Translations under genes and position numbers: made by a program
Source of the DNA: Azolla caroliniana
Taxonomy: Eukaryota; Plantae; Polypodiophyta
DNA length: 64,000 bases
Assembly: GCA_043228905.1 (NCBI GenBank)
Contig: JBHGNT010000015.1
Location: 17,918,001 to 17,982,000 of the forward strand
Direction of reading: 5' to 3'
Part shown: in pieces, positions 9,920 to 58,787 of the stretch
How positions within the stretch are numbered: position 1 is the first letter of the stretch
Layout of the letters: each line of letters starts with the position of its first letter
The notes under the pieces: generated by a model
The model's input: only the letters and a program-made list of their open reading frames with translations
What the model was told of the DNA's origin: nothing
Databases searched by the model: none

Positions 9920-12431
9920 ATGTGGCATTATCGTTGGCACTTGTCACCACATATGGTAAGAACCATCTTCTTGCGAACTTTCTTGTTGTACTGTGTTGAT
10001 TGTCAAGGCTGCTGTTGTAGACCAATACCCAATCTCCTTCTTCGATCTTCTTGGGACGCAGTCAATGCGTCTTGTCAAACCGAATTTTGTTCTTCACTCG
10101 GGCTGCCTCCATCATCTTTCGCACTTTTTCTAGATCTTCAAGTCTTCTTTCAAGTTGCCTTATCCATGCCGCTAATAAATCTTCTCGGCTCATCTCGTTC
10201 TCCCATGGTATCGCTACCCATGAGGCGATTGTGCTTTCGATGGGCATTACCGGCTTTTGTCCATACATAAGCTCCGTTGGCATATACCTTGGTGTGTCGT
10301 TCTGTCAGCCCACAAGGCATAAGGCAATAGTCATGGCCAATTCCCGACTCGACTGTTGCATGCTCGTACGATGGCTTTGACGATAGGTCCATGCCCTTGC
10401 TCGATCTTCCCATTTGCTTCTGGATTGTAGGCATTCATGAGGGAGAGCTTCACGCCTAGTCGTTCGAAAAGCTCTGTTGCTTTGTGTGCATCCAACTCCC
10501 CTCGGTCGGCGACTATCTTTCCCACACATCTGTATCGGCAGACAACCTCTTCGAGTAGAAATTTGCAAACAACAGATGTCGTCTTATTTGTCAAGGCCCA
10601 TCCTTCCACTTGATTTGTCAAGTCTTCTCTTGCCAAACCTAAGTACTTCATTTGTCCCACTCCCATTGGCATTGAGACCAGATCCACCATCCATTTGAAG
10701 TGTATGGTGAGTGGGTATGTTGGTCGTAGCTGATCACGATGACGTATATTCGAATGTACTTCGTATCTACAATCACATAAATCGACTTCCCTTCGGTATA
10801 GTCGGCCTTTCTTAGTGCTGGAGCTTTAAGAAGTTCTTCAATCTTTGCATCGCGTTTGTGTGCTCTTCTTGCCATTCGAACTTCATTTTTTTCTTTAGAA
10901 ATCCATATAAAGGCTTGACAACATGGGCATAGTGCAGAATCTAGATGTGATAAAACGCGCATGCTCCAAGGAACCTTCGAACCTCCGTTTGGTTTACGCA
11001 TTCTTCTTTCATATCCTGGATCGTGTTCACCTTGGATGGCGAAGGCTTCTGGCCGTATGCTCTGCACAAGTGACTTACCACCAAGATCTCTGGTTGCCCA
11101 AATGCAGATTTTTCTCCCGAAAATGTCAAATTCACATCTTCGAGCCTTTGGAGCACCTTCTCACAATCTTTCATATGATCCACGACGAACATTCTACACC
11201 CTTCCTTATCTTTCGATTCATCTTTCTCCTCATCCAAACATCCTTTTATCGGAATATCATCCAAGAACGGCATCGTGATGTCCGGGATGCAATCCTTCAA
11301 GACCTTGTTCATGGCATTCACCATATGAGCCACTGAGTTCATTGCATCTTGAGGTAAGGTACACATCCGCACGAGGCCGATCGGAGTCCTCATGGTTGTA
11401 ATGCCACGACTATCGATCGCCAACTAGAATTGGTCATGTCCAGAGTAGAGATCGCCAATGGAGTAGATGGACCACCCCACAAACGCTTCGGCAAATTCGT
11501 CCACGCTTCGACCGATTCCAGCATTCCGAATTGTCACCTTGCTGACGGGTTGAAGATCTTGGATGAAACGCAATGATCCATTCTTCTTCAGCACCGTGAA
11601 CCACCTATTAGAATAAGGAGCATTTGACGATTCCGAAATTCCCATATTCACCTTCTCCTTTAAGAGCTCGATCAACTTCGGTGGGTGTGCTCTCGGAACC
11701 GGTATCAGTTTCAAATTCCAAGGTACGTGCGGCACCGTGAAGATCACCATCGGCTCTATCGTCCTTGGATCAACACATCCGATTTCTTGTGGGAAAAATG
11801 CGAAAGCCTTCCCATGTCTCTCAATCATGTCGTGAAACATTCGCTCTTCTTCAGGGAGGAGGAAATCCTCCCTTCCAACTCGTAGCTTTCCCTTCGTCTC
11901 TTCGATGAAGACATGACATATTGCCTTCGGATCCCTTAAGCTTGGATCATTAGCGACTTCCTTCATTTTTTGCCAGCTATCTTCAGGTAGCGGAACCGCA
12001 ACTGGCTTGATCTTCTTATCCACCGTTTTATATTTTGTGTTGATGTCAGCTTCCTTCATCAAGATGCTTCGATGAAATTCATCGATGATAACGTACATGT
12101 TGATGGAGTTAACCGAAATCACGAGTCGATCGTGAAGATAAGTCAAGTCCACGACGTCCTCGATTTCACCGATGGTGTCGTTAAATGAGGCCTCTTCCAT
12201 AATATGAGTCACAGACTCTTCTTCTTCTATTATGTTTTTTTCTTTCAGCATCTTCTCGAAGTCTTGTATCCGACGCTTGTGCTTCTTGTCAGGTAATACT
12301 AGTTTACATGCGCCACTAGGTGTGACGCATGTTGCTTCTCCTTGCAATCCACGCGCTCTACCTTTTTGTGGGAACTTGTGATTGCTCGGACTATTTGTGC
12401 CCCATGCTTCAATAGTCCGCTCTAAAAATTC
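9920..12431 (-). pseudogene. pol: B pol (RT, RNase H, integrase), disrupted, with an internal deletion near 10765
   Basis: TVPHVPWNL, YSNRWF, QDLQP and MPFLDDIPIKG RT motifs. VRRFLG. Integrase WMVDL, VADRGEL, YNPEANG, ELMYGQ and a degenerate GPY motif. Confidence 0.88.
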
Positions 12432-13411
12432 GAGGATTCGCCTCCAAATCTATCTCGATTTCTTTCATGATTAGCTCGCACCGTTAGGAATTGAACAGAT
12501 CTTTGATTGTCAAGAATCTTGATTCGTGCAAAGGTTGCTCCATTATCGAACACCTTGGTCTTCATCCGGGATGATGTGATATACGGTTGACCTAGGATGA
12601 TAGGATGCGAACTTGATTCTTGTACAAAGAAGTGTTGATCCATCTCCACATCCCCGATCGTGACTTTAACATTTGGACAAGATCCGAACAAGTCTTTTGT
12701 CGCCTTTGTTGCCGCTCGAATCTTCCATCTGTGGTTTGTATTAATTGGTCATCTTCTTTTTTTGTAGAAGTCGGTCGACATGAGGTTGATCTCCGAGCCA
12801 TGGTCGATCAAGGCTACCACAGTCTCTTTCTTCTCCCCGATCTTCACCGGCGTCTCCGTTGTCGCTCGTGCCCAATGAGGTCGAGTATAGTGGTTGTCCA
12901 GCATATCTTCATCGACTTCGTCTCTTGCCATCATTATGGCATTTGTTTTTGCTTTTTGTGGCTTCTCTTCTTCCTCGTCCGATTGTTGCCTCTTTCTTTT
13001 TACAAGGTCCACGATTGTGTCATGGAACTCCTTCTTCGTAATGCCAAGCAATTCTCTCAAGGACAAAGTCATGTGGCTATCAAGAACGCATTCCTCGAGA
13101 ATCTTCTTTAGGTCTGTCGTCTGCTCTATGTCCGACCTTAGCTTATAGGTAGGCATAGTTCTTGTCTTCCGAGCGGGGTCTTCAACACCAACCTTCACGG
13201 GTCAAACCGTTTTTTTGACTCGTTTGCTTGACTCTTCTTTCCAGCTTGAGTCTCCATCCTCTGTTTGTAAAGCTAGAGTTGCTTCTGCATCTTCTTTCTT
13301 CTTTGTGCTCCTTGTTTCATTTCTTTTTGATGGGCTATCTTGCCCTTCCATTCTTTTTCTCTTTTCATCCACAAACACTTCATGGTTGTCACACATCACT
13401 TTCGTGAGTAT

Positions 13412-14939: not shown

Positions 14940-17072
14940 CCCCCACCTAACCGCGCATCCACCGGTATGCGCCAAAATTGTGCTCTGGTTGGAGAAAACC
15001 GGTCCGAGTTTCGGTTCTTCGTCCATCAAATCGTCCTCCGTTTCGGACTGTTCGTCATCGCTGCCCAGGCCTCTTAGATCCGGTTCGCCGTCGTGGCGCT
15101 TTTTGAACACTTTGATCCGCTTCCCCGCCAACGGTATCGCCATCCTCGTACCGTCGAGTTCCGCCAGGTGATACGTCCTATTGTTGTTGGCGCTCGTTAC
15201 CACGTAAGGCCCGAACCACCGCTTTGCAAACTTCCGTGTTGCCCGGTGCTGGTTGTCGAGGCTGCTATCGTAGATTAGCACCCAGTCGCCTTCCTCGATT
15301 TTCTTTGGCCGGAGCCGGTGCGTTCGGTCAAACCGGGCTTTGTTCCTCATCCTCGCCGTCCGAAGTCTCTCCGCGGCTCGTTCCACGTCCTCTGGCCTCC
15401 GCTCGAGCTGCCGTATACGCGCCGCTAGCAGTTCTTCCCGGCTCATCTCGTCTCTCCAGTCCACTATCGCCCAAGAGGAGATCGTCTGTTCCATCGGCAT
15501 GATCGGCTTCTGCCCGAAATGAGCTTTGTCGGCATGAACCCGATTACCGAACTGTGTGTTGTCCTGTCCGCCCACAAGGCATAAGGTAACAGTCGTGGCC
15601 AGTTCCCGACCTGGCCCCCGAATGGCCGGACTAACGCTTTGACGATCGGTCCGTGTCCACACTCCACCTTCCAGTTCGCCTCCGGATTGTACGTTGTGGT
15701 GAGCGAGAGCTTGACCCCTAACCGGTCGAACAACTCCTCGGCCTCTTCGGCGTCCAACTCCCCGCGGTCAGCCACGATCTTCCCGACGCACCCGTACTGG
15801 CATATCACGTCCTCGATCAGGAACCGACACACGGCCGTGGTCATTTTGTTCTGCAGGGCTCGGCCTTCTACTTGGTTCATCAGGTCCTCCCGGGCCAGCA
15901 CCAGATATCGCATCTGCCCTATGCCCATTGGCATCGTCACCAAATCTACCATCCATTTGAAATGGATGGCCGGAGGGTAAGTAGGGTGAAGCTCTTCTTG
16001 ATGTCGGACTATGGAGTGCATCTGACAGCTCTCACAAGTTGTCACAAACCGATGCACGTCCCGGTACAGTCCCGGCCACCAGTACTTCTCCTTTAGTTTC
16101 TCAAACGTGGCCCACGTTCCACGGTGTCCAGCCCAGGGGCTGTCGTGGTAGGCCTTCAGTAACTCCTCCTGTTCCTCCTTCATCGCCACTACTCGGAGCG
16201 GGATGCCGTTTCTCTTCTTCGGGTGCAGTAAACCACCGGTTCGAGTACGGGGCACTCGACGGTTCGAGGATGCCCATATTGACTTTCTGTCTTAATAGCT
16301 CCATCAGCTCCGGGATGTGAGCTCTGGGTACCGGAATTGGTTTGAGATTCCACGGCACATGCGGTACCGTGAATATTACCATCGGCTTCACGACCGTGGA
16401 GTCTACGCACCCGATCTCTCCCGGTGAGAATGCGAAGGCTTTCCCGTGCCTTCCGAGCATTCTCCGAAACTGGTCTTCTTCCGCCGGCAGTAGGAACCCG
16501 CCCCCACCGATTTTGAGCTCCCGTAGCGTTCTGTCGGTGAAGGCGTGTCCTATGCAAGCCGGATCTCGTAAACTGGGGTCCGACGCGACCCCCTTGATTC
16601 GCAACTCGCTGCCCTCCGGTAAGGGTGCCGCGACTGGCCTTACCTTCCGGTCCACAATCTTGTTCTTCGCGTTAACCCGGGCCATCCGATCTGACTCGAG
16701 CCCTCGACTGAAGTCCACGATGACTTCGTACATCTCTTCTGAACAAACCGGTATCGTCCGGTCCTCTTTAAGGCCCTCTCCGACCACCTCTCGCAGTATT
16801 CCCAAGGTATCGTCGAAGGAGACCGCCTCCACGGCTCCGTTGATTTCCTCGCTGGGCCCGAGAACTCCGCACGCCCGAAGTCGCTCTTCCACCCTTGTCT
16901 TTTCTCGGCCTACGACGCCGACTATCGTACACCCTCCGTTGTCGGAGAAACAAAACTTCCTACTTATGGTACAAGGTTTCTTCGGTTTCGCCTCTATCGT
17001 ACATTCGTGGGGTTTTCCCGGACTGTCCGGACTATCGCGGCCCCACGCCTTGACAGCCCTCTCTAAAAATCC
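14940..17072 (-). pseudogene. pol: C pol: RT N-terminus fused by deletion (about 16225) to integrase
   Basis: TVPHVPWNLKPIP...YSNRWFT joined to PKKRNGIPLRVV. Integrase H-H-C-C (HDSPWAGH...CESC), VADRGEL and WFGPY. Confidence 0.88.
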
Positions 17073-17683
17073 TCTCGGTTCTCGCCACCGAGGGACTCGT
17101 AGTTTCGCTCGTGGTTCGGTCGCACCGTCAGGAACTGGACCGAATGACGCCCGTCCTGACTCTTGACCCTCGCGTAAGCCGACCCGTTGTCCAGCACCTT
17201 GGTCTCCATTCGCGCTGCCGTAATGTACGGTTCTCCCAGTATGACTGGGTGCGAGGACGTCTCCTGCACAAAGAAGTGCTGGTCTATCTCGACGTCGCCG
17301 ATCTTGACTCGCACGTTTGGGCAGGCCCCGTGTAGTTCCTCGGTGGCGCGCGTCGCCGCCCGTATATTCCACCCATGCTTGGTGTTGATCGGCCATTTCC
17401 CCTTCTTGTAGAAGTCCATGGACATCAGGTTTATTTCCGAACCGTGGTCCAACAGCGCCACCACCGGTTCCTGAACATCTCTGATCTTTACCGGGGTTTC
17501 TGTGGTCGCTCGGGCCCAGTGTGGCCTCGAATAGCGGCTCTCCGCCCACTCGTCTTCCAGCGCCATGTCCTCTATGTGCACTGTCCACACCTCCATCGGC
17601 CTTTCCGGTTCTGCCTCCATCGACAGCCTCTTCCTCTTCACCAAGTCTACGATGGAGTCGTGGAACTCCTTCTTGGCAATTCT

Positions 17684-20600
17684 AGACGGAAAAATCGACA
17701 CTTTCCAAACTCCACCTCTCGGCCACAACCAAGGAAACACACGAATCGTTGTTGCAGAAAATGGGAAATGCAAAAGTAAATAAGTGGACACACGATTTAT
17801 CGTGGAAAATCCTGTACGGGAAAAACCACGGGAGTACAAGACTCCGAACCAAAACTATACACAGAGAAATATACAATGGCGAGCTGCAAGGCGACGACCT
17901 TGAGCTCGCTGTCCTCGCCACAGGCGGCGGAATTACACAGAGGCGTCGACCTCTTCCTCTCTCACGCTCTATCTCTCTCACGGCTGCTCTCTCTCTCTCT
18001 CACGGCTGCTCTCTCTCTTCACTCCTCTTGAGTGGAAAAACAGAAAAATGAGTAGCAACATTAAAACTGTTTGCCCTAAGTCATATTTATACACATATGA
18101 CTTTAGGGCTATTTACAACTATAGCCTCAAGGGCCCTTGGCAAACATATTCACAGATATGTCCCCGCATCCGGATCTCTCTCCGGGTACATTCGTCATCC
18201 GGCTCCGAAGCCGGGGTCTTCATCATCCGGTTCCGAAACCGCAACCGGGCTTGTCGTCATTCATCTCCGACATCCGACCATCCCATCTGAAAGGGACCGT
18301 AAACCCAACAAACTCCCCCTTCACTTCGGCATGGGATGTCTCTCCAATCCGATCCTCTTTCGGCATGCTTCCAGCTTGTCGGGTGTGAGCACCTTGGTCA
18401 GCATATCCGACCCGTTCTCGTCCGTGTGGATCTTCGTCAGCACGAACTCCTTGTCTTCTATCCTTTCCCGGATCCAGTGATATCTTCGCTGGATGTGCTT
18501 CGTCCGGGAGTGATAGGCCGCGTTCTTCGCAAGGTGGATTGCACTCTGACTGTCGCAGTAGAGTCGGTACTCCTCCTGCCGGATACCGAGCTCTCTAATG
18601 AAGTCCTTCATCCATATTATTTCCTTGCCGGCTTCAACAGCCGCCATGTACTCTGCCTCCGTGGTTGACAACGCAACCGTCTTCTGCAGCCTCGACTGCC
18701 ATGAAACAGCTCCCCCTGCATACGTCATCACATACCCTGATGTGGACCGGCTGGTATCTGCATCAGCCGACATATCCGAATCGGTAAAGCCGTCGAGTTC
18801 GGGCTTACCGGAACCGAATCGGAGGCACACGTTTGCCGTGCCCTTCAGGTATCGGAGTATCCACTTGGCCGCGTTCCAATGCTCTTTGCCGGGATTGCTC
18901 ATGTACCGGCTCACCACTCCGACTGCGTATCCAATGTCCGGTCTTGTACACACCATTGCGTACATCAAGCTTCCGACGACAGAGGCATATGGCACTTTCA
19001 TCATGTCCTCCTTCTCAGCCTTTGTCTTGGGGCTTTGCTTGCTGGACAGCTTGCAGTTTGCCGGGAGGGTCGATCCGACCGGTCTTGCTTCCGACATGTT
19101 GAACCGTTTTAGCACCTTTGTCACGTACTTCTCCTGTGACAGCCACAACTGCTTCTTGCTCCGGTCACGGATGATGTGCATCCCTAGTATTTGTCTCGCC
19201 GGACCCAAGTCCTTCACTGAGAAGGTTCGGTGAAGAGCCTTCTTCAGCATCCGTATCTTGACCTGGTCCCGTCCGACGATCAACATGTCGTCCACGTACA
19301 GGAGGAGTATTAGAAAGTCTCCTCCTTCGAACTTCTTCACAAACACGCAGTGGTCGGACTGCGTTTTGAGGTACCCTTCGTCGATCATGAAAGAGTCGAA
19401 CTTCCGGTACCATTGCCGGGGAGCCTGCTTCAGACCGTAAAGGCTCTTCTTCAACCGGCATACCAGGTGCTCCTTCCCTTTCTTCTCGAATCCTTCCGGA
19501 TGCTGCATGTAGATCTCTTCTTCGAGGTCACCGTGAAGGAATGCCGTCTTCACGTCCATCTGTTCTACCTCGAGGTCCATGCTTGCCGCTATGCTCAGCA
19601 CCGTCCGGATGGAGGTCATCTTTACTACCGGGGCAAATATCTCGTCGAAGTCGACGCCCTTCTTCTGCTGAAACCCCTTCACCACGATCCTGGCTTTGTA
19701 TCTCGGGGGGTTTCCGGCATCTCCCGGTTTCAGCTTGAACACCCACTTGTTTCGAAGTGCCCGCTTTCCTTTCGGCAACTCCACAAGTTCATATGTGTGG
19801 TTCTCATGCAGGGAATCCATCTCGTCCTGCATGGCACTCAACCACCTGCGGCTCTGGGTGTCATGCTTTGCTTCTTCAAAGCTCTCCGGCTCCCCCTCGT
19901 CGGTTAGCAGCACGTGCTCTGGTTCCGGAAATCTCCGGGGGGCCCTTCTCTCTCTTAGAGGATATCTCCGTTCCGGAGCTTCGGTAACCGGCTCCTGCGT
20001 TTCTTCTTCATCCGAATCCATTTCGGGATCGGGGCCGGTTCCGGTATCATTTTCATCTTCCTCGGCCGGTTCTGTTTCTTCACCGTCTTCGGCCGGATCT
20101 TCGAGTGTTAACCGGTCCCTTGCCGGTTGGGACTGCTCCTCGTAGAGTTTATCCTCACCGGTCGACTTGGAGCTCTTCATCTTCTTCTCCGACTCCCAGT
20201 CGGCGAGTGTCTTGTTCTCCATGAAGATGATATCACGACTCCGGAATATCTTCTTGTCGACCGGGTCCCATACTCGGTAGCCGAACTCGTCATCGCCGTA
20301 ACCGAGGAATATGCATGGCCGGGTCTTTGGATCTAGCTTTCCTCTCCGGTCCTTTGCCACATGCACGTATGCGAGACACCCGAACACCTTCAGATGCCGG
20401 TAGGATACTTCCCTACCGGTCCACACTCTCTGCGGCGTGTCTCCGTCCAAAGGTACTGAGGGTGATCTGTTTATCACGTATGTCGCCGTCGACATCGCCT
20501 CAGCCCAAAACCCTTTGGGTAATTCCGCATGCGCCAGCATACTCCGGACCCTCTCCATTATGGTCCGGTTCATCCTCTCGGCCAGCCCGTTCAGTTCCGG

Positions 20601-23051
20601 CGTCTTCGGCACAGTAAACTAGAGCCGCATTCCCTTCGAGCGACAGTACTCCGCGAACTGCCCCCGGTATTCCCCTCCGTTATCCGCTCGTATCGCTTTC
20701 AGCTTCTTGCCGGATTCCCTTTCCACTCTCGCGTGGAGTTCTTTGAAGACGCACAACACTTGGTCCTTTGTCTTCAGCGGTGCCGTCCACAGTTTTCGGC
20801 TATGATCATCTATGAATGTTACGAAGTACTGGGCTCCGCCATGTGACGTCGTTTCTACCTGACACACGTCAGTGTGCACCAACTCCAATGGTGCGCTACG
20901 TCTCGTCGGTGGCCTTGAGTGGAAGGAGGTTCGGTTCTGCTTACCGACCAGGCAATCGGTGCACTTCTCCAGGTGCACATGCTTCACTGGAATAAGGTTG
21001 TCTTCTGCAAGCCTCTTCATCCCCTTCTCACTCATGTGACACAGTCTCTTGTGCCACAGCTCACCGGCAGTGTCGGCTGCCACGTTCAACTCTTCCGGAC
21101 GCAACCAGGCATTCATAAGGTACAGTGTGTTGACTTTCCGGGCCCGAGTCACTATCAGGCTCCCCTTGCTGAACTTCATTACGCCGTTCCGGATGCTACC
21201 TGTGTAGCCTTCATCGTCTAGCCTCCCGGCCGAAATCAGGTTCAATCGAACCTCCGGAACGTGTCGGACATCCTTCAGCAGCATTTTGCATCCGGTCGAG
21301 GTTGTCAACGACACGTCTCCTATGCCGGCAATCCGGCACGTACCTTCATTTCCCATCCGAACACAGCCATGCTCACCGGCTGTGTAGGATGAGAAGTATC
21401 TTCTCTCCGGGGTCAGGTGGAACGATGCTCCGGAATCGACCACCCAGGTCGTCTCATCGCCGGCAATGTTTAGTTCACCTTCTTCGGTGATGAGCATGAT
21501 TTCTTCCTCACTTGCCGCGAGTGCCGTCGTTCCTTTCCGGTCCTGCCCTCGCCGATCCGGACCTCTCCGGTCCGTGGCTCCTCGGTATGCACCGTTTCTC
21601 TCCGGTGACTTCTTCGAATCGGTGTCGTCGGCTCCGTTGTCCTTTCGGTAATGCCGACAATTCTTCCGGAAGTGTCCCGGCTTCCCACAGTGGAAGCATG
21701 TGGGTCTTCCTCTTGACTGCGACCGGGTCCCTGACTTCTCCCGTCTTTGCGGACTCCGGTTCCATTGTCTTCCCCGTTCCGATTCTGTAAGCAGCGCCTT
21801 CGAGTCGGAGGCCGGTTCTTTATCTCTCCGATGCGCTTCTTCGTTCAAAATACTTGTCTTTACCGTTTGTAGGGACAAGTTATCTTCCGTGCAGGAGGTG
21901 CTGAGAGTCACCACCAAGTTCTCCCAGCTTTCCGGCAATGTACACATCAGAATGATGGCTTGCATTGCATCCTCCAGCGGGAACTTGATCGCCGCAAGCT
22001 GGTTCACGAATCCCATGAACGTGCTTACGTGTTCCACCATACTCTCGCCGTCCCGGTACTTGAGGTTCACTATCTTCCTCATCAGGGAGGTCCGGTTCAA
22101 CGCATTCTTCCTCTCGTAGAGGCCCGACAGCTTCCGCCACATCTCATATGCGTTGATGTCATTCGCCACATGTTGTAGAACGCTCACGTCGACGTATTGC
22201 CGAATGGTTGCAACGGCTTTCTGGTTCAGAAGCCTCCATTCCGACTCAAGTACCCCCTTCGGTATTTCCGACCTGTCAATCGGTTCGTACAGGTCCCGAA
22301 CAATCAGAAGATCCTCCATCTTGATCTTCCAGTCGGCGTAATTCTGCGCATTCAGCACCATCGTCCCCGGCTGCCCGTTGCCGCCGCCTTCCATTTTCTG
22401 CAGCAGCCCGCTCTGATACCAAATTGACGGAAAAATCGACACTTTCCAAACTCCACCTCTCGGCCACAACCAAGGAAACACACGAATCGTTGTTGCAGAA
22501 AATGGGAAATGCAAAAGTAAATAAGTGGACACACGATTTATCGTGGAAAACCCTGTACGGGAAAAACCATGGGAGTACAAGACTCCGAACCAAAACTATG
22601 CACAGAGAAATATACAATGGCGAGCTGCAAGGCGACGACCTTGAGCTCGCTGTCCTCGCCACAGGCGGCGGAATTACACAGAGGCGTCGACCTCTTCCTC
22701 TCTCACGCTCTATCTCTCTCACGGCTGCTCTCTCTCTCTCTCACGGCTGCTCTCTCTCTTCACTCCTCTTGAGTGGAAAAACAGAAAAATGAGTAGCAAC
22801 ATTAAAACTGTTTGCCCTAAGTCATATTTATACACATATGACTTTAGGGCTATTTACAACTATAGCCTCAAGGGCCCTTGGCAAACATATTCACAGATAT
22901 GTCCCCGCATCCGGATCTCTCTCCGGGTACATTCGTCATCCGGCTCCGAAGCCGGGGTCTTCATCATCCGGTTCCGAAACCGCAACCGGGCTTGTCGTCA
23001 TTCATCTCCGACATCCGACCATCCCATCCGAAAGGGACCGTAAACCCAACA
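17684..23051 (-). mobile_element. Full-length Tnt1-like Ty1/copia element F
   Basis: 627-bp LTRs at 17684-18310 and 22425-23051 with about 5 differences by eye. TSD ATTCT. PBS-Met TGGTATCAGAGC at 22410-22421. PPT GAAGGGGGAG. Confidence 0.96.
18321..22394 (-). pseudogene. gag-pol: F gag-pol polyprotein with a single premature stop (20619-20621)
   Basis: CCHC knuckle, DSGAS protease, LWHKRLCH, integrase VHTD/RADNGGEY/NGLAER, RT YVDD, RNase H FTDSD. Confidence 0.94.
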
Positions 23052-24584
23052 ATTCTGAGCACCTCCCGCAACGACAGTTCCACCTTGCTGTCGAGGATTC
23101 GTTCTTCCAGGACCTTTCGTAGGTCCGTGGTTCTTTCGATCTCCGTGCCCAAACGGTATCCGCCCTTCTTGTGGTTATCCCGAGCACTGGACTCACTGGC
23201 CTCATTCCGTTTCGGCCCGAATCGGGTTTCGTATCTTTGTGAGGGTCTAGCCCCTCCGGTTTTACCTACCCGTTTGTCTTCAACTAGAGCCTCGTAGTTC
23301 GGGCAAGCTGCTTCGATGAAACCCGTCTTTTCTTCGACCGGGTCACTCCACCCGGTTACCCCTGGACCCGCTTTTCCGCGCGGTCCGCCTCGTCTTTCTT
23401 TAGTCGGGCACCGACAAGGCCTTCCAGCACCGTCGGCCAGAACCCGGCTTTGCTCTCCTTCCGGGCCTCGCTGCCTCCGACCCGAATACCGGCTGACGCT
23501 GAGTAGTGGACGGTCTCCGCGTGCCAGGCCGCCGCCTTTTCCATCAGCCTTTTCATTCCTCCTCGCCCGTCGTTCCGGTTCAGGGCCCTCCAGGTATTGC
23601 TGGCATGCACCCGACCTTCCCATAGGTACACTACCCTGCTTCTCAAAGCCTGCATAAAGTCCCCGCAGTCTTTTCGGACGTGGCCGACCTCGTCGCACCA
23701 CATGCACCTATTTCCTTCCGGAGGCCGTCGGTGACGAGCCTGATCGCCGCCTTCCCTCCGAGCCTGGGCGATCTGGAGTTCCTTTACCGCCCGTGTCAAC
23801 TCCTCCAAAGCTGTCCCCCCGGACGAGCCTCTGACCTCGCCGGTCGAAGCCGAACCAGTTTCGAGCCACTCCCGGGTCTCTTCCCGTCACGCCTGCGGTA
23901 TCGGTTCGAGATTCCTTGCTGCGACAGGACCCGCCCCGATCGCCCCTGTATCAGCCCACTCCCACTGTTTGTCAAAACATCCGCAGACTCTTTTTACTAC
24001 GGCCCAGTCGGCCGTCAGCCCGTCTTCGGTTTCCAGTAAGGAGCCCACTTGCTCCCAATCCCGTGCATCAACCGATTTGACAAACAGTAGGACACGACTT
24101 GTGTCCAGAACGGTCCGATCGAGCACCGAAAGGCGCGCAAAGCGATCCTCAAACTCCCGGAGGAGTGCCGACGCATTTCTTCCTTTGTCGGGGGACTCCA
24201 CCCACTCCATGAAGCCCCGCTTCGAAAGTCGAAGCGCGTCATCCAGCCCGTATTTCTCCAGGAGCCCTCCTTCGAACTCCTCCCAGGTCCGGCTCTCCGC
24301 CCGGACCTCGAGCACCTCCGCATGGATGCCCGGCATCGCCACTCGAGGGAATCCGGCAAGACGCCTCTCTTCCGGAATATCCCTCATCAACATCTCCGCC
24401 CGGTAGGATGCCAAATAACTCGTGGCATCCTTTCCACTGAACCGGCCGATCATACCGACGATCGCCTCAATAGCCCTGTCAAGGGCGCCGGTGCCCTCGC
24501 GCGCGCTCATTATCCGGTCCACGATCGAAGCCATGGCCTCTGCAAGATCCGACCCCCTCATCTTCTGCTCCTCTGCCGCCTGTT

Positions 24585-51646: not shown

Positions 51647-54600
51647 GTAAACGTTTTAGATAATCAATTAAAGACCACTACAACATCATTGACTTAATGA
51701 AAAAAATTACATATAAACTAAACACATGATTAGATGGGAGAAGAGAGAATAGAAAGAAAAATTATGGAAAGAGTTACCGAAGTTCTTTGTTGATCGTTGT
51801 CTGGATCAAGGCCAACCGCACAACGATCCATCAGCATCAATCAAAAGACAAATGAAAAACAAAGAAACATTAGTACAAAAATCTGATACCAAATATTATA
51901 GATCTAAGTACTAAAGTAAGCTTAAGATAAGGATAAAGAAATGAAAGATAGAAAGGAGAAAGAGAAAGAAGGGTGCCGATCCACCCGACCACCCCCGAGC
52001 GAAGGGATCGAGACGGACTCGAGCCTCGATCGGCGTCCCATACCACCGCCGTGGCGTCGAGTCGTACCTGGTGCCGGCGCGCTCGCTACAAGAGTTGACC
52101 CACCACACGAGCAGAGTCTCGATGTAGTCAAAAGATCATCAAATGAGGGTAGCTAGGCCTCTTATTTATAGCGATACCCAAGGCCCCCAGGCAAGTTCAC
52201 ACTTGACCTAATGGATTGTCTCAATCCCGAGGATTAAAAGTAATCCTCCCCTTCTTTACACTCTCGTTTAACCCTCACACTTATCCACGTGTATAGAATA
52301 CTACGGTAAATTCTTACCACGGGATATTATATGGTCATGCCCGTAACAGTAGGTGCCATTGTCATTGGCGCTTGTCAAGCATAAGGCCCGAACCACCTCT
52401 ATGTAAATTTCCGCATCACCTTGTGCTAGTTGTCGAGGCTGTTGTCGTAGACCAGAACCCAGTCACCTTCCTCGATTTTCTTCGGTCGTAGTCGGTGAGT
52501 CCGATCGAATCGCCCCTTGTTCTTTGTCCTTGCCACATGCAGCTTCGTTGTTGCTCGTTCCACATCCTTCTGTCTTTGCTCGAGCTATCGGATTCGCGCC
52601 GCTAACAACTCCTCCCGGCTCATCTTGTCTCTCTTGTCCACCGCAGCCCATGAGGAGATCATTCGCTCCATCGGCATGATTGGCTTCTGCCCGTACATCA
52701 GCTCCGCCGGCATGAACCTAGTTACCAAACAGTGTGTAGTTCGGTCCGCCCACAACACGTAAGGTAGGAGCCGCGGCCAATTCCCGACTTGGCCTTCACA
52801 TGCCAGTACCAACGCCTTTACGATTGGCCCGTGTCTGCGTATATCCCGTAGGAAGAATCGGTACGCTTTCTTCCAGATTGGGTTAGCCTCTTCCTTCATC
52901 CACCCCGCGTCCGGGGTCATCGTTTTTAGGAACCCACCAATCTAGAGCCACTCCCCGTCGTACTTGCTCTCGTCGAACTCGTTAAGCGCCGGAGTGCCCC
53001 CCTTTCTCGTCTTCACGTAAGCCATCTTCAAGAAGTCCACTCCGACTTCCTCGTCCTCTGAAACCATGATGCCCTTGTCATCAAACCTCGCTCTCGAAAG
53101 CATGTCGGCCATGGCGTTGTCCTTCCCGGAGATGTGCTGAATCTCCAGATTCAGGGACTTAATGTATGTTATCCACCTTAGCATTGCCAGGTCTAGAGTC
53201 GCGCATCCGGAAACCATACCGAGAATCGGTAGGCTGTCTGTCTCTATTATTACCTCTGTCCCGATTAGGTAGTCTTTGTCGGCCTTGACCGCCGAACCGG
53301 AATCCCAGAGTTTGCATTTAACCTGGGTGTATCCTCGTTGTCGCTCGCTAATTACTTTCGCACCGAATCGGATGGGGAACCTCATGCTGTTCTCATCCTC
53401 CTAGTTGATCACCCATCCGATTCTAGTCGGACTCGTGTCTACGGTTACATAAATCACAACATGTTTGCCGTAGACCGCTTTCAGGAGTGTCGGTACCACG
53501 GCAAGCGCTTCTTCCATTTGTTGGACCGACTCCGCATGCTCCCCGCTCCACTCGAACTTGCGCCCTTTCTTCAACAACCCGTAGAGCAGCTCCGCGATAT
53601 GGGCGTAATGCAGGATCCAAATGTGGTAGAACTCGCAAGCTCCCAAGAACCTCCGGACTTCTGTAACCGACTTGCAGTCTTCCTTCATCGCGGAGATAGC
53701 CTCCACCTTAGCCGGAGACGGTTTCCGGCCATAAGGCCCACACAGGTGTCCGAAGACCATGATTTCCGACTGTCCGAAAGCCGATTTCTCCATAGAGAAG
53801 GTGAGCCGCGTGCCTTCCAGCTTCTGTAGCACCTTCTCGCAGTCTCCGATGTGGTCCGAGACGAATTTCCGACACCCATCCAATCCGACCATTTCGTCCT
53901 TATCCTCCACCAGACATCCCTTTATCGGAATGTTATCCAAAAACGGCATGGTGATGTCTGGGATGCAGTCCCTTAGCACCTTATTCATCACATTCACCAT
54001 GTGTGCTACCGAGTTTGTCCCCCCTTGCGGAAGGGTACACATCCGCACTAGGCCAAGAGGAGTCCGCATTGTCGTAATATCCATGCTCTATACGACTAGT
54101 TGGAATTGGTTGTACCCCGAGTACAGATCCCCAACTGAGTAAATCAACCTTCCGGCGAAAGCCTCCGTGAACTCGTCAATGGTCGGTCCGATTCCTACGT
54201 TCTGAATGGTCACCCTGTTGACCGGCTACAGGTCCTGAATAAAGTGCAACGTGCCGTTCTTCTTTGGCACGGTAAACCACCGATTCGAGTATGGGGCACT
54301 CGACAGTTCGAGGATGCCCATCTCCACCTTCTGCTTCAACAGTTCCATTAGCTTCGGGATGTGAGCTCTGGGTACTGGAATCGGTTTGAGATTCCACGGC
54401 ACATGCGGTACCGTGAAGATAACCATCAGCTCAACGACCGCCGGGTCGGGTCTACGCACCCAATCTCTTCCGGCAAGAATGTGAAGGCCTTCCTGTGCCT
54501 CCCGAGCATTCTCCGAAACCGTTCCTCCTCCGCCGGTAATAGAAAACCACCCCCACCAACCTTGAGCTCCCGTAGCGTTATGTTGGTGAACAAGTGTCCT

Positions 54601-56610
54601 ATGCCGGCAGGATCTCGTAAACTTGGGTCCGACGCGACCCCTTTCATCCGTAACTCGCTGCCCTCCGACAAGGGTGTCGGGACTGGTCTCACCTTCCGGT
54701 CCACGGTCTTGTACCTTGTATCCACATGGGCCATCCGATCCGACTCGACCCCTTTCCCGAAGTCAGTGATGACTTCGTACATCCGTTCTGAACTAACCAG
54801 AATCGTCTTGTCTTCACTAAGGCCTTCTTCGAGCACGTTCCTCAGATCTCCCAAGGTGTCATCGAAAGAGACTGCCTCCACGGCGTTGCCTATCACTTCG
54901 TCGGGGCCTAGGACTCCGCATGCCCTAAGATGTTCCTTCACCCGTTTCTTCTCCCGGCCGCTAATGCCGGTTATTGTACAACCTCCGTTGTCAGAGAACC
55001 AAAATTTCCTGTCAATAGTAAAGCGTTCCCTTCCTATAGTACACTTGTGGGGGTTTTCCGGGGTGTCCAGACTATCGCGGCCCCATGCCTTGATAGACCT
55101 CTCTAAAAACCCCCTCGACCTTCGCCGCCGAGGGTCTCACAATTGCGCTCGTGGTTCGGTCGCACCGTTAGAAATTGGACGGAGTTCCGCCCATCTTGGC
55201 TCTTCACTCGAGCGTACGCCGAACCGTTATCCAGCACCTTCGTCTCCATGCGTGTTGTCGTAATGTACGGTTGTCCGAGTATCACCGAATGTGAGGATGT
55301 CTCTTGCACGAAGAAGTGTTGGTCAATCTCGACATCACCGATTTTCACCCGTACATTTGGGTAGGCCCCGTGTAGCTCCTCCATGGCGCGCGTCGCCACT
55401 CGTATTTTCCACCTGTGCTTGGTGTTGATCGGCCACTTGCCCTTCTTGTAGAAGTCCATAGACATCAGGTTGATCTCCAAACCGTGGTCTACTAGACATC
55501 TCCGATCTGAACCAGGGTCTCCGTAGTGGCTCTTTCCTAGTGCAGCTTCAAATAGTGGCTTTCCGCCAACTCGTCTTCCAGGGCCATATCTTCTAGGTGT
55601 GTCGTTCGCACCTCCACCGGCTTCTCTGGCTTCACCAAGTCCACAATGGAGTCATGCAATTCTTTCTTGGCGATCCCAAGCACTTCCCTCAGCGACAGCT
55701 CCACCTTTTTTAAGATTGCTTAAAGTGTGCGGCACTTCATCGAGGGTTGTTTGGGGTGGACTCAAGTTTAGATCTTATTTGTATGTCTAAACATAAGTAG
55801 TGATATAGTTTTAGAAGAATAGAAAAGTGAGGGCGTGGGTGGGGGTTAGGGGAGTGTAGCTTGTTGAAATTATCAAAAGTATTTAAACCTAATCAAAGTT
55901 TTTAGAATATATTAAAGATCATTGGGATAACTTAAGTTATTAGACAACAATAACGTACTATTAAAACACCAATATAGAGTATTATTAAAACGGGACCACA
56001 CGCTTAGATGAACGAGAGTTGTTTAAACACACGCTTAAGCAAACACTTAAAAGAAAGATTATTATAAAAAATAAGAATAAAAATAAAAATAGAAAAGAGA
56101 GATTGAGATTAAAAAATGATTATGGTTAAGAAGGGATTATGATTAAGGGGGAAGGGGTTGCTAAACAAAGTACTTAAACGAATGTTTAAACAAATATTTA
56201 GATAAGAAAACACTTGGGCAGACACTTAACGCAAGGTTAGGATTAAAAGAGAAGGGAGGGATTATGGTTAAAGAAAAGGGGTCATGGTTGAGAAGAGAAT
56301 GATTATGATTAAGAGAGGAGAGTACTTAAACAAATGTTTAAACAAAAAGTTAAACCTAAAAATGATTGAACAAGTACTTAAAAAAAAGGGGTTAAACAAG
56401 TACGTAATAAAAATGTTTATTAAACAAGTACTTAATAGAAAATGATTAAATAAATGCTTAAAAACTTAAGACAAAAAAAAATTTGATAAAAAAGTGATTA
56501 AACAAGTACTTAATAAAAATTTATTAAATAAGTACTTAAGAACTTAAGACAAAAAATTAGATAAGAGCAACACATAGAAGGAAAGAAAGTTTTACTATCA
56601 TAAGGCAACG

Positions 56611-56656
56611 ATCGGCAAATGCATTTCGCCTCGATGGAGGCTCTTCAGTGCCCGAT
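56611..56656 (-). ncRNA. Minimal type-I hammerhead ribozyme
   Basis: Minus strand: AUCGGGCA CUGAAGA GCCUC-CAUC-GAGGC GAAA UGCA U U UGCCGAU. It has the conserved core boxes, a 5-bp stem II, a 7-bp stem I with one bulge, and a palindromic AUGCAU stem III. Confidence 0.85.
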
Positions 56657-56693
56657 GTACAAATGATGAAAACTAAGCCTACTAGGTTGCTCT

Positions 56694-56700
56694 TTTTATA
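56694..56700 (-). promoter_or_regulatory. TATA box upstream of the hammerhead
   Basis: CCCTATAAAAAG on the minus strand, about 40 nt upstream of stem I. Confidence 0.5.
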
Positions 56701-58787
56701 GGGAGAGGGAGGAGAGTCCTTTGTATGTGGGACATACAAAAGTGTGTACAAAGGGAAGGTAAAAGAGTGTACACAAGACTTTAGGTGGGGGTTAAGAGGG
56801 GTGAGAGTACATAAAACATTAGGTGGGGGGAAAGGATGCGTGTACTAGGTGGTTTCTTAGTTTTTTACCATTTAGCCAACACGTGAGAGGGGGTGTAAGG
56901 GAATTGTATTGTGGTTGTCCTAGAAGGGGTTTAAGTTTGTTTCTCACGAGCGCTCCGATTTGGAGTTTTTTGATACAAGGGGAGTATCGAAGCTTAAAAA
57001 CAATGGGTGGAGGTTTTTTGTTGTTGGGTTGGTTAGAGAGTAGTTGGTTTCGTATGGAGTAGGGGACGGTCGAAAAACACTTGAGTAGGAACTTCGATGG
57101 GTAGCCCCTAGCTCTTAGGCGGTCGTAGAAGGACCTTCTACAGGTCCGTCATTCTTTCTATCTCGATACTCAACCGGTAACCGGCTTTCTTTGTTGTATC
57201 TGGTGTGCCGGAAGTACCGGCGTCATTCTGCTTCGGCCCAAACCGGGTCTCATACCGTTGCGAGGGTTTGGCCCCTCCGGCCTTCCCCGCATGTATGTCT
57301 TCTACCAGAACCTCGTAGTTCTGGCACGCAGCTTCCACGAAGCTGGACTTTTCCTCAACCGGATCGCTCCACCCGGTGACCTCCCGGACCCGTCTTTCCG
57401 CGCGGTCTGCTTCCTCCTTCCTCAACCGCACACCGGTGAGGCCTTCTAGCACCAACGGCCAAAACCCAAAGTCCTTCGTCTTCCGGCCTTCGTCACTCCC
57501 AACCCGGATTCCTGCCGACGCCAAGTAGTGGATGGTCTCCACATGGCGTGCTGCCACATCTTCCATCAGCCTTTTCATTCCTCCTCGTCCGATATTCAAC
57601 TCCAAGGCTCTCTAGGTCTCGCTAGCGTGCACCCACCCATTCGACAGGTACACCATGTTAGCCCTTATCACTTCTGCGAAGTCCACGCAGTCCTTCCGAA
57701 TGTGACCGACCGCGTCACACAACAAGCACCAATGCCCACCCGGAGGCCTCCGGTCGTGAAATTGCTCGTCGTCGTCCCTCCTTGCTTGTGCAATTTGTAG
57801 GTCTCATACCATTTGCGTCAGCTCTTCGAGAGCCACTCCTCCGGACGGGCCTTTGACCACGTTGGTCGATGTCGAGCCTGTCTCAAACCAATCCCGGGTT
57901 TCCTCCCTTCGTGTCGGTAGGGGTCCCTCGAGCTTTCTTGCTGCAATAAATCCCGCGCCCGATGAGCCCTTGTCGCCCCCACTCACGTCGTTTGTCGAAA
58001 CGGCCGTAGACTCTTTTCACCACGGTCCAGTTAGTCGTCAGGCCGTCATTTGTCTCCAGCAGGAGACCCACTTACTCCCGATCCCGCACGTCCACAGCCT
58101 TTACGAACAACAAAACCCGGCTCGTATCTAGTATGGTCATGTCCAGTGCCGAGAGCCATACAAAGCGTTCCTCAAACTCCCGGAGGAGCACCAACACGTT
58201 TCTCCCCTTTTCGGGTGTCTCCACCCACTCCATGAAATCCTGCTTCGACAGCCGAAGCACGTCATCAAGCCCGTACTTCTCAAAGAGCCAACCTTCGAAT
58301 TCTTCCCAGGTCCGGCACTCAGCCCGCACCTCGAGCACCTCCGCGTGGATGCCCGTCATTGCCACCCGAGGGAATCCGGCCAGCCGCCTGTCCTCCGGAA
58401 TGTCCCTCATTACCATTTCGGCTCAGTAGGCCTCTAGATAGCTCACGGTGTCCTTCCCACCGAACCGGCCTATCGCACCAACAATTGCTTCGATGGCCCT
58501 GTCGAGGGCGTTTGTGCCCTCACACGCACTCACTATCCAATCAATGGCAGAAGCCATGGCTTCGGCAAGTTCCGATCCCCTCATCTTTCGATTCCTCTGC
58601 CGCCTTGTTTCACGTCGGTTTCACCAAATAATGTCGTGTTATTCTGCATGCGCAGGAGAAACCAAGGCGGGACCGCGGGGGGGCTGAACCGGGGAATAAC
58701 TTAACAGAGGGAGGAGCGACACAAAACCACGGTAGAGCCACGCACACAAATACACAGAGAACTCACAACAAAGATCGAACAACGAAT

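Follow-up and report, generated by a model that had tools for sequence, protein, structure and literature searches.

We analyzed a stretch of 64,000 nucleotides from Azolla caroliniana (Polypodiophyta; assembly GCA_043228905.1, contig JBHGNT010000015.1, positions 17,918,001 to 17,982,000 of the forward strand), hereafter referred to as the window. On its minus strand, the gag region of a gypsy-like long terminal repeat (LTR) retrotransposon is interrupted by an insert (55708-57130) that carries a type I hammerhead ribozyme motif (56611-56656). This insert is very probably a dead, 5′-truncated copy of an autonomous, endonuclease-less Penelope-like retroelement (PLE), comprising the last ~1.42 kb of a unit of ~5.15 kb. 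Its limits were drawn from its identity to a metagenome contig (L002), from the joints of empty sites and from the alignment to sister copies of the host. At the 5′ junction, one nucleotide (T 57130) could stem from either side, and at the 3′ junction up to two (A 55707-55706).

The first 312 nt of the insert (57130-56819, minus strand) encode the end of a reverse transcriptase (RT), which is the second open reading frame (ORF2) of the element. The codons run in frame from 57130 to 56822 and yield 103 residues, corresponding to F475-T577 of a 577-aa RT (P0001), followed by a TAA stop codon at 56821-56819. BLASTP against P0001 returned 101 of 103 identical residues (E=2e-70), in agreement with tblastn. 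At the nucleotide level, 1353 nt of the insert (57130 to 55778) are 98.4% identical to L002:3826-5171. As the insert thus carries an in-frame RT end at 98% identity, we conclude that it is the 3′ end of a protein-coding element that has been truncated at its 5′ side.

The parent element became apparent from eight loci (L001-L008), which were collected from metagenome contigs with a pattern that fixes the hammerhead core and helix III and leaves helix II and loop 2 free. Upstream of the part that matches the window, L002 contains two large ORFs, of which ORF2 is the RT P0001 and displays the motifs ADKN, FDVVSLYPS, GTAMGS and YIDD. The full unit of ~5.15 kb consists of ORF1 (~650 aa, no family match), ORF2 (577 aa) and a 3′ untranslated region (UTR) of ~1.1 kb. 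Within the 3′ UTR, a TATA-containing block is followed by the type I hammerhead ~160 nt after the RT stop codon, by AT-rich repeats and by a hairpin-bearing end with a short A run. ORF2 ends ~100 aa after the thumb, and Pfam detected neither a GIY-YIG nor another endonuclease domain in it. The RT has 655 homologues at E≤1e-5, the named ones stemming from Selaginella moellendorffii, Cryptomeria, Ginkgo and Closterium. Among the matches listed, most are ~550-650 aa in length with PF28514, PF26215 or RVT_1, and no endonuclease family is on record. Along its entire length, P0001 shares 41% identity with a Selaginella protein of 580 aa; its nearest Atlas clusters (DUF8422, HTH_animal, RVT_1) are commonest in Rotifera. 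An autonomous partner sharing the hammerhead, as suggested by a first-pass annotation of the window, was found; it lacks the GIY-YIG domain that had been expected alongside the RT, so a search for an RT plus GIY-YIG would have failed.

Several of the related loci retain more than one unit. L004 harbors two hammerheads 5139 nt apart in head-to-tail orientation. The tail of the unit in L003 abuts the next unit, and the ends are identical over 55 nt (L003:1-55 and L003:5148-5202), which gives a unit of 5147 nt. L017, one of the loci selected by RT protein (see below), contains a tandem of two diverged units. Head-to-tail pseudo-LTRs carrying the hammerhead are thus present in L003, L004 and L017, while the window copy is a solitary fragment. 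The L003 contig closes on itself, as either a tandem array or a circular form would.

The element family is multi-copy and common to related species, with at least three organism labels. An exact unitig spanning 56483-56832, which includes the TATA box and the ribozyme, reached a word depth of 1650 in run X1 and of ~360 in a run labelled as a second organism; diverged family copies occur under a third label. The ribozyme and TATA block of the window copy still match this high-depth family sequence. The copy itself lacks a complete ORF1 and ORF2 and is a dead fossil fragment. One run guessed to be RNA covers 56585-57130 as contigs, the ends and strand of which are unreadable; it was not counted as evidence for cleavage.

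Downstream of the ribozyme, AT-rich degenerate tandem repeats of the 3′ UTR occupy 56321-56556 (minus strand; period ~26, ~8 copies, also period 78) and are poorly conserved between lineages. The 3′-terminal segment (55706-55798, minus strand) is conserved. It contains the hairpins GUUUAGA..UCUAAAC and AAGUG-CCG-CACUU, ends in six A residues (A6; 55711-55706) and shares 80-83% identity with the tails of L001 and L004, in which the remaining 3′ UTR fails to align. The same A6 3′ end is found in L003. The window copy ends in CUUAAAAAA inside the gypsy gag. Both 3′ ends of the L004 units (L004:2520-2545 and L004:7750-7785) continue into units similar to CCCTAAA (the plant telomere repeat in reverse complement), which are absent from the copies in the window and in L003.

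The host of the insertion lies on the minus strand from ~58.6 kb down to 52.3 kb, and the window contains two sister copies of it, at 24.6-15.2 kb and at 13.4-9.9 kb. Upstream of the insertion, its degenerate 5′ part (57131-58590, gag region) is collinear with 23100-24567; the gag region of the sister copy shows a weak match to DUF4100. Downstream (52358-55707), the rest of gag and remnants of RT and RNase H, identified by matches to RVT_1 and RT_RNaseH, are collinear with 15200-17680 and 9950-13066. Junction alignment to the sister copies showed that the insert replaces 22 nt of host gag between ..AAGGTCCT and AAGGTGG.. In keeping with this, contigs from public runs that represent uninterrupted copies of the host family connect 55707 with 57129/57130 through 21-25 other nucleotides. 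Neither the sister alignment nor these empty sites reveal a target-site duplication (TSD). The loss of ~22 bp of target without a TSD, which had been noticed in the first reading of the window, is thereby borne out. We also considered a 5-bp duplication (AGGGG/AGGTG), suggested by a weak likeness of 57129-57105 to the lost 22 nt, and rejected it, as this stretch is RT coding sequence of the element. The sister copy at 24.6-15.2 kb is itself split by a copia element (17681-23050, minus strand), which sits only ~36 bp away from the position that corresponds to the PLE insertion site. The same ~40 bp of gag has thus taken two independent insertions, one in each of two host copies.

Because the element lacks an endonuclease, we infer that the insertion was primed at a break. 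Reverse transcription would have started from a free 3′-OH at a DNA break in the gypsy-like gag, primed through 0-2 nt of A/T microhomology between the plus-strand end ..CCACC(TT) and the A residues at the RNA terminus. It would have stopped, or been joined, after 1.42 kb, and the 5′ side would have been closed by end joining. Such a break-primed insertion would account for the 5′ truncation, for the missing TSD and for the 22-24 nt of target that were lost. The lack of a TSD, the 22-nt deletion and the 0-2 nt of microhomology would also fit non-homologous end joining, and the insert could be captured filler, i.e. a cDNA or DNA fragment of the element that was ligated into the break rather than reverse-transcribed on site. 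We regard this as improbable, as the 3′ end of the insert is the family's own terminus with the A6 run of L003; this is predicted by priming at the RNA 3′ end, not by the capture of a random fragment.

Even less probable, in our view, is that the insert belongs to a gene-less, non-autonomous family, derived from a PLE or resembling a retrozyme, that borrows the machinery of an autonomous element. The first-pass annotation had proposed such a family and had described the insert as ORF-less, and a plain list of ORFs indeed contains none above 79 aa in it. This description overlooked the 103 in-frame RT codons at 57130-56822 with their stop codon: the insert begins inside the RT gene and is 98% identical over its whole length to an autonomous copy, the full-RT contig L002. 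Moreover, in all four public runs other genomic copies extend past 57130 into further RT codons and encode GYMELRKK on the minus strand, the residues directly before F475. The insert has one hammerhead, of type I and not of type III, and blastn found no terminal direct repeats in it. A solo LTR and a Helitron are excluded by the RT coding sequence, and the insert has neither TG..CA nor TC..CTRR ends.

The hammerhead motif of the truncated PLE copy reads, on the minus strand from 56656 to 56611, AUCGGGCA-CUGAAGA-GCCUC(CAUC)GAGGC-GAAA-UGCA-U-U-UGCCGAU, exactly as first annotated. The 5′ strand of helix I, AUCGGGCA (56656-56649), is followed by the core CUGAAGA (56648-56642), a 5-bp helix II (GCCUC/GAGGC, loop CAUC; 56641-56628) and GAAA (56627-56624). 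Helix III is formed by the palindrome AUGCAU (56624-56619), in which UGCA is closed by A15.1 and U16.1. U17 (56618) precedes the predicted cleavage site between 56618 and 56617, and the 3′ strand of helix I, UGCCGAU, spans 56617-56611. All type I core features are present (C3-U4-G5-A6-N7-G8-A9, G12-A13-A14, A15.1-U16.1 and a residue H17 that is not G), and they recur in every family copy and in every copy selected by protein. Helix I is open and contains both the 5′ and the 3′ end of the motif. Compared with the first annotation, helix I has to be corrected in that it comprises a bulged G, or just four contiguous proximal pairs.

To search the window, we employed our own descriptor, which demands the core, a short helix III, and at least 4 bp in each of helices I and II. 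It matched once in the 64-kb window, compared to 0.003-0.007 matches per simulated 64-kb sequence. Likewise, a covariance model built from the sequences of the related loci detected exactly one site, and no second hammerhead was found in the window by blastn, by pattern or by this model. By itself, the motif proves nothing: it is rare per window, yet it is expected repeatedly across a scan of many windows. Therefore, conservation in related loci is the decisive evidence.

Within L001-L008, the positions left free by the search pattern vary. N7 is A or G, loop 2 reads CAUC, CUUC or CAUU, and one helix II pair changes to U-G; in helix I, two pairs change to G-U, and the fifth pair is C-G, U-A or U-G. 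Conservation of the 3′ UTR block stops exactly where helix I ends. A further set of 13 loci (L009-L021) was fetched by RT protein identity alone. A hammerhead resides on the RT strand in 12 of these, 11 of which were recognized by the descriptor and one, in L012, as a weakened copy. In L010-L021, it lies 300-1100 nt after the RT stop codon or in the upstream repeat. The copy in L012 (L012:3540-3588) belongs to the L011 lineage and has C11.1 replaced by U and one helix I pair broken, in an otherwise intact RT locus.

Across 12 distinct sequences, 97% of the cells pair, compared to 32-39% for slid controls, and six of the eleven helix pairs show changes on both sides. The observed covariation score was reached by none of 500 shuffles. 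Although the descriptor applied to the protein-selected loci does not demand a palindromic helix III, the 6 nt of helix III are perfectly palindromic and occur in five spellings (AUGCAU, ACAUGU, ACUAGU, ACGCGU and AUCGAU). Following the description of PLE-type hammerheads by Cervera and De la Pena 2014, we found the G10.1-C11.1 pair, which is G-C in 11 of 12 sequences and G-U in the remaining one, and a palindrome formed by 15.2-16.2 together with loop 3, in support of the proposed type I hammerhead of the PLE kind. An unpaired nucleotide between A9 and G10.1 is absent from the window lineage and from most plant lineages and is present in L017-L019 and L005. Every lineage, including six found by protein similarity alone, carries U17, with AUU or GUU as the triplet. 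The notion that AUU in the window had decayed from AUC is thus untenable, since U17 is the normal state of the family. Related copies do keep the core and the pairings, as the first reading had asked, and judged by this sequence record the hammerhead is a genuine conserved part of the element family.

Two further observations concern the ribozyme. A distal extension of helix I is possible (ACUUGUA/UACAAGU in L001 and L004, AUCAU/AUGAU in the window lineage; 56570-56672, minus strand) and would account for the conservation of the AAGUAAAAC block that directly follows the ribozyme. In addition, a contig from a JGI metagenome holds an unrelated hammerhead (L005:140-189) with an extra nucleotide before a 6-bp helix II, a different helix I and the same AUGCAU-U; its flanks show no similarity to the plant family.

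That the motif is a chance match without RNA function, in a block conserved merely as a DNA promoter, seems the least probable of all: Rfam scores far below threshold, a folding energy no better than that of shuffles (z = -0.38) and an upstream TATA block as conserved as the motif itself would fit it, but not the low descriptor rate, the end of conservation precisely at the end of helix I, or the two-sided changes and five palindromes in mostly protein-selected lineages whose RTs are just 40-49% identical to P0001.

Our interpretation as a hammerhead-bearing PLE has to be weighed against a number of observations. The Rfam hammerhead models, which had been recommended as a check, gave no hammerhead in the whole window at gathering score, none in an E-value search of a 2.1-kb region and none in ten related loci; the best hit, in a 111-nt search, was Hammerhead_3 with 15.1 bits against a threshold of 48.5 (E=0.67). 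Rfam probably misses the motif due to its very short helix III. The conservation of core and helix III in L001-L008 is there by construction, as the search pattern fixes both. The Selaginella locus L009 contains no hammerhead within 4 kb as judged by descriptor and covariance model; two CCCTAAA units lie inside the 3′ end of its RT gene (L009:5590-5620). A search of the RT against a local Pfam library and PDB sequences returned no match. The assignment to the PLE clade is suggested by layout features and Selaginella homology. The 3′ end of the window copy is devoid of the reverse-complement telomeric repeats described for Athena and Coprina. Finally, the in vitro cleavage of similarly minimal PLE hammerheads is poor (PMC4209133).

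The TATA box that had been noted about 40 nt upstream of the motif was confirmed as TATAAAA at 56700-56694 (minus strand), 52 nt before C3 and 38-44 nt before helix I. It is part of a conserved block of ~100 nt, which is conserved as strongly as the ribozyme. In nine lineages, whose RTs share just ~40-49% identity with the query RT P0001, the TATA box is located 38-53 nt before C3 of the ribozyme. From this spacing alone, transcription is predicted to start near 56667-56670, a few to ~20 nt before helix I. In head-to-tail full elements, the tail of the upstream partial copy would act as a pseudo-LTR. A transcript starting there would carry the ribozyme as its first RNA structure, at its very 5′ end, and again in its 3′ UTR. 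The start site of published Penelope and Chlamys elements likewise lies within the pseudo-LTR (PMC8557442).

As helix III is a mere 6-nt palindrome, a single motif cannot close it, and two motifs are needed. These motifs, located on separate RNAs or as the 5′ and 3′ copies of a single RNA, would anneal via the palindrome and cleave after U17 (56618). If U17 and U1.1 are counted, the palindrome of helix III grows to 10 nt (AAA-NNNN-UUU), which holds for every plant lineage (56627-56616 on the minus strand, L010, L011, L014, L017, L020 and L021). RNAcofold favoured the predicted dimer by 6.7 kcal/mol, with the whole 10-nt AAAUGCAUUU paired, and this palindrome could serve as an RNA dimerisation site. 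More speculatively, and with little probability as a whole, the promoter-proximal hammerhead and the 10-nt palindrome might constitute a combined cap-removing and RNA-pairing module, which would join two genomic RNAs, or the 5′ and 3′ ribozymes of a transcript exceeding unit length. Cutting at both sites would then release a unit-length RNA with 5′-OH and cyclic-phosphate ends that plant tRNA ligase might circularise, so that plant endonuclease-less PLEs could replicate via circular RNA as retrozymes do and patch internal breaks genome-wide, not just at telomeres.

Endonuclease-less PLEs with hammerheads are already known from Selaginella, and our analysis does not reveal a new kind of system. 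It does show that such elements occur in abundance, and have been active recently, in a non-seed plant other than Selaginella. Endonuclease-less PLEs are reportedly restricted, for the most part, to chromosome ends; the window copy landed inside another transposon and bears the marks of a break-primed insertion. We did not find a TATA box at a fixed short distance before the ribozyme, a universal U17 or a helix III palindrome in five spellings stated in PMC8557442 or PMC4209133. These features make the ideas of a dimer and of 5′ processing directly testable in a plant.

The element most closely resembles the endonuclease-deficient PLEs of the Coprina/Athena type and of Selaginella moellendorffii, with which it shares an RT of ~580 aa that has a DKG-like motif and lacks GIY-YIG, an ORF1 upstream of the RT, pseudo-LTRs formed by head-to-tail copies, a type I hammerhead close to the 3′ end and 5′ truncation (PMC8557442, PMC4209133). 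Endonuclease-less PLEs carry hammerheads near their 3′ ends, and those of Selaginella have type I motifs in their pseudo-LTRs (PMC4209133, PMC8557442). It differs from them in that it inhabits another non-seed plant and that the copy lies in a gypsy gag rather than in telomeric repeats, without reverse-complement telomeric units. In addition, helix III is a bare palindrome, as in animal PLE hammerheads, whereas the Selaginella motifs were described with typical helices (PMC8557442, PMC4209133). Like the minimal type I hammerheads of animal PLEs and satellite transcripts (Schistosoma, newt, Drosophila virilis Penelope), the motif combines an open helix I, the G10.1-C11.1 pair, a helix III of 1-2 bp whose palindromic loop implies that it acts as a dimer, and a site in a pseudo-LTR downstream of the element's promoter. 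Unlike these, the window lineage has no unpaired nucleotide between A9 and G10.1, its helix II measures 5 bp, U17 is universal (AUU or GUU) and the palindrome extends over 10 nt (AAA-NNNN-UUU).

Plant LTR retrozymes carry type III hammerheads in two direct LTRs of ~350 bp, flanked by 4-bp TSDs, with a primer-binding site and a polypurine tract and without coding sequence. The insert is comparable in being a retroelement-borne hammerhead in a plant genome, for which circular RNA products are conceivable. It is unlike them in its type I ribozyme, its single hammerhead, its coding RT tail and its lack of terminal direct repeats and of a TSD; every feature tested speaks against identity with a plant LTR retrozyme. 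Regarding the mode of insertion, the closest parallel is given by endonuclease-independent LINE-1 insertions at breaks, which share the lack of a TSD, the target deletion, the junction microhomology and the 5′ truncation. Here, the RT probably belongs to a different clade, and the lack of an endonuclease is the normal state of the element and not an exceptional pathway.

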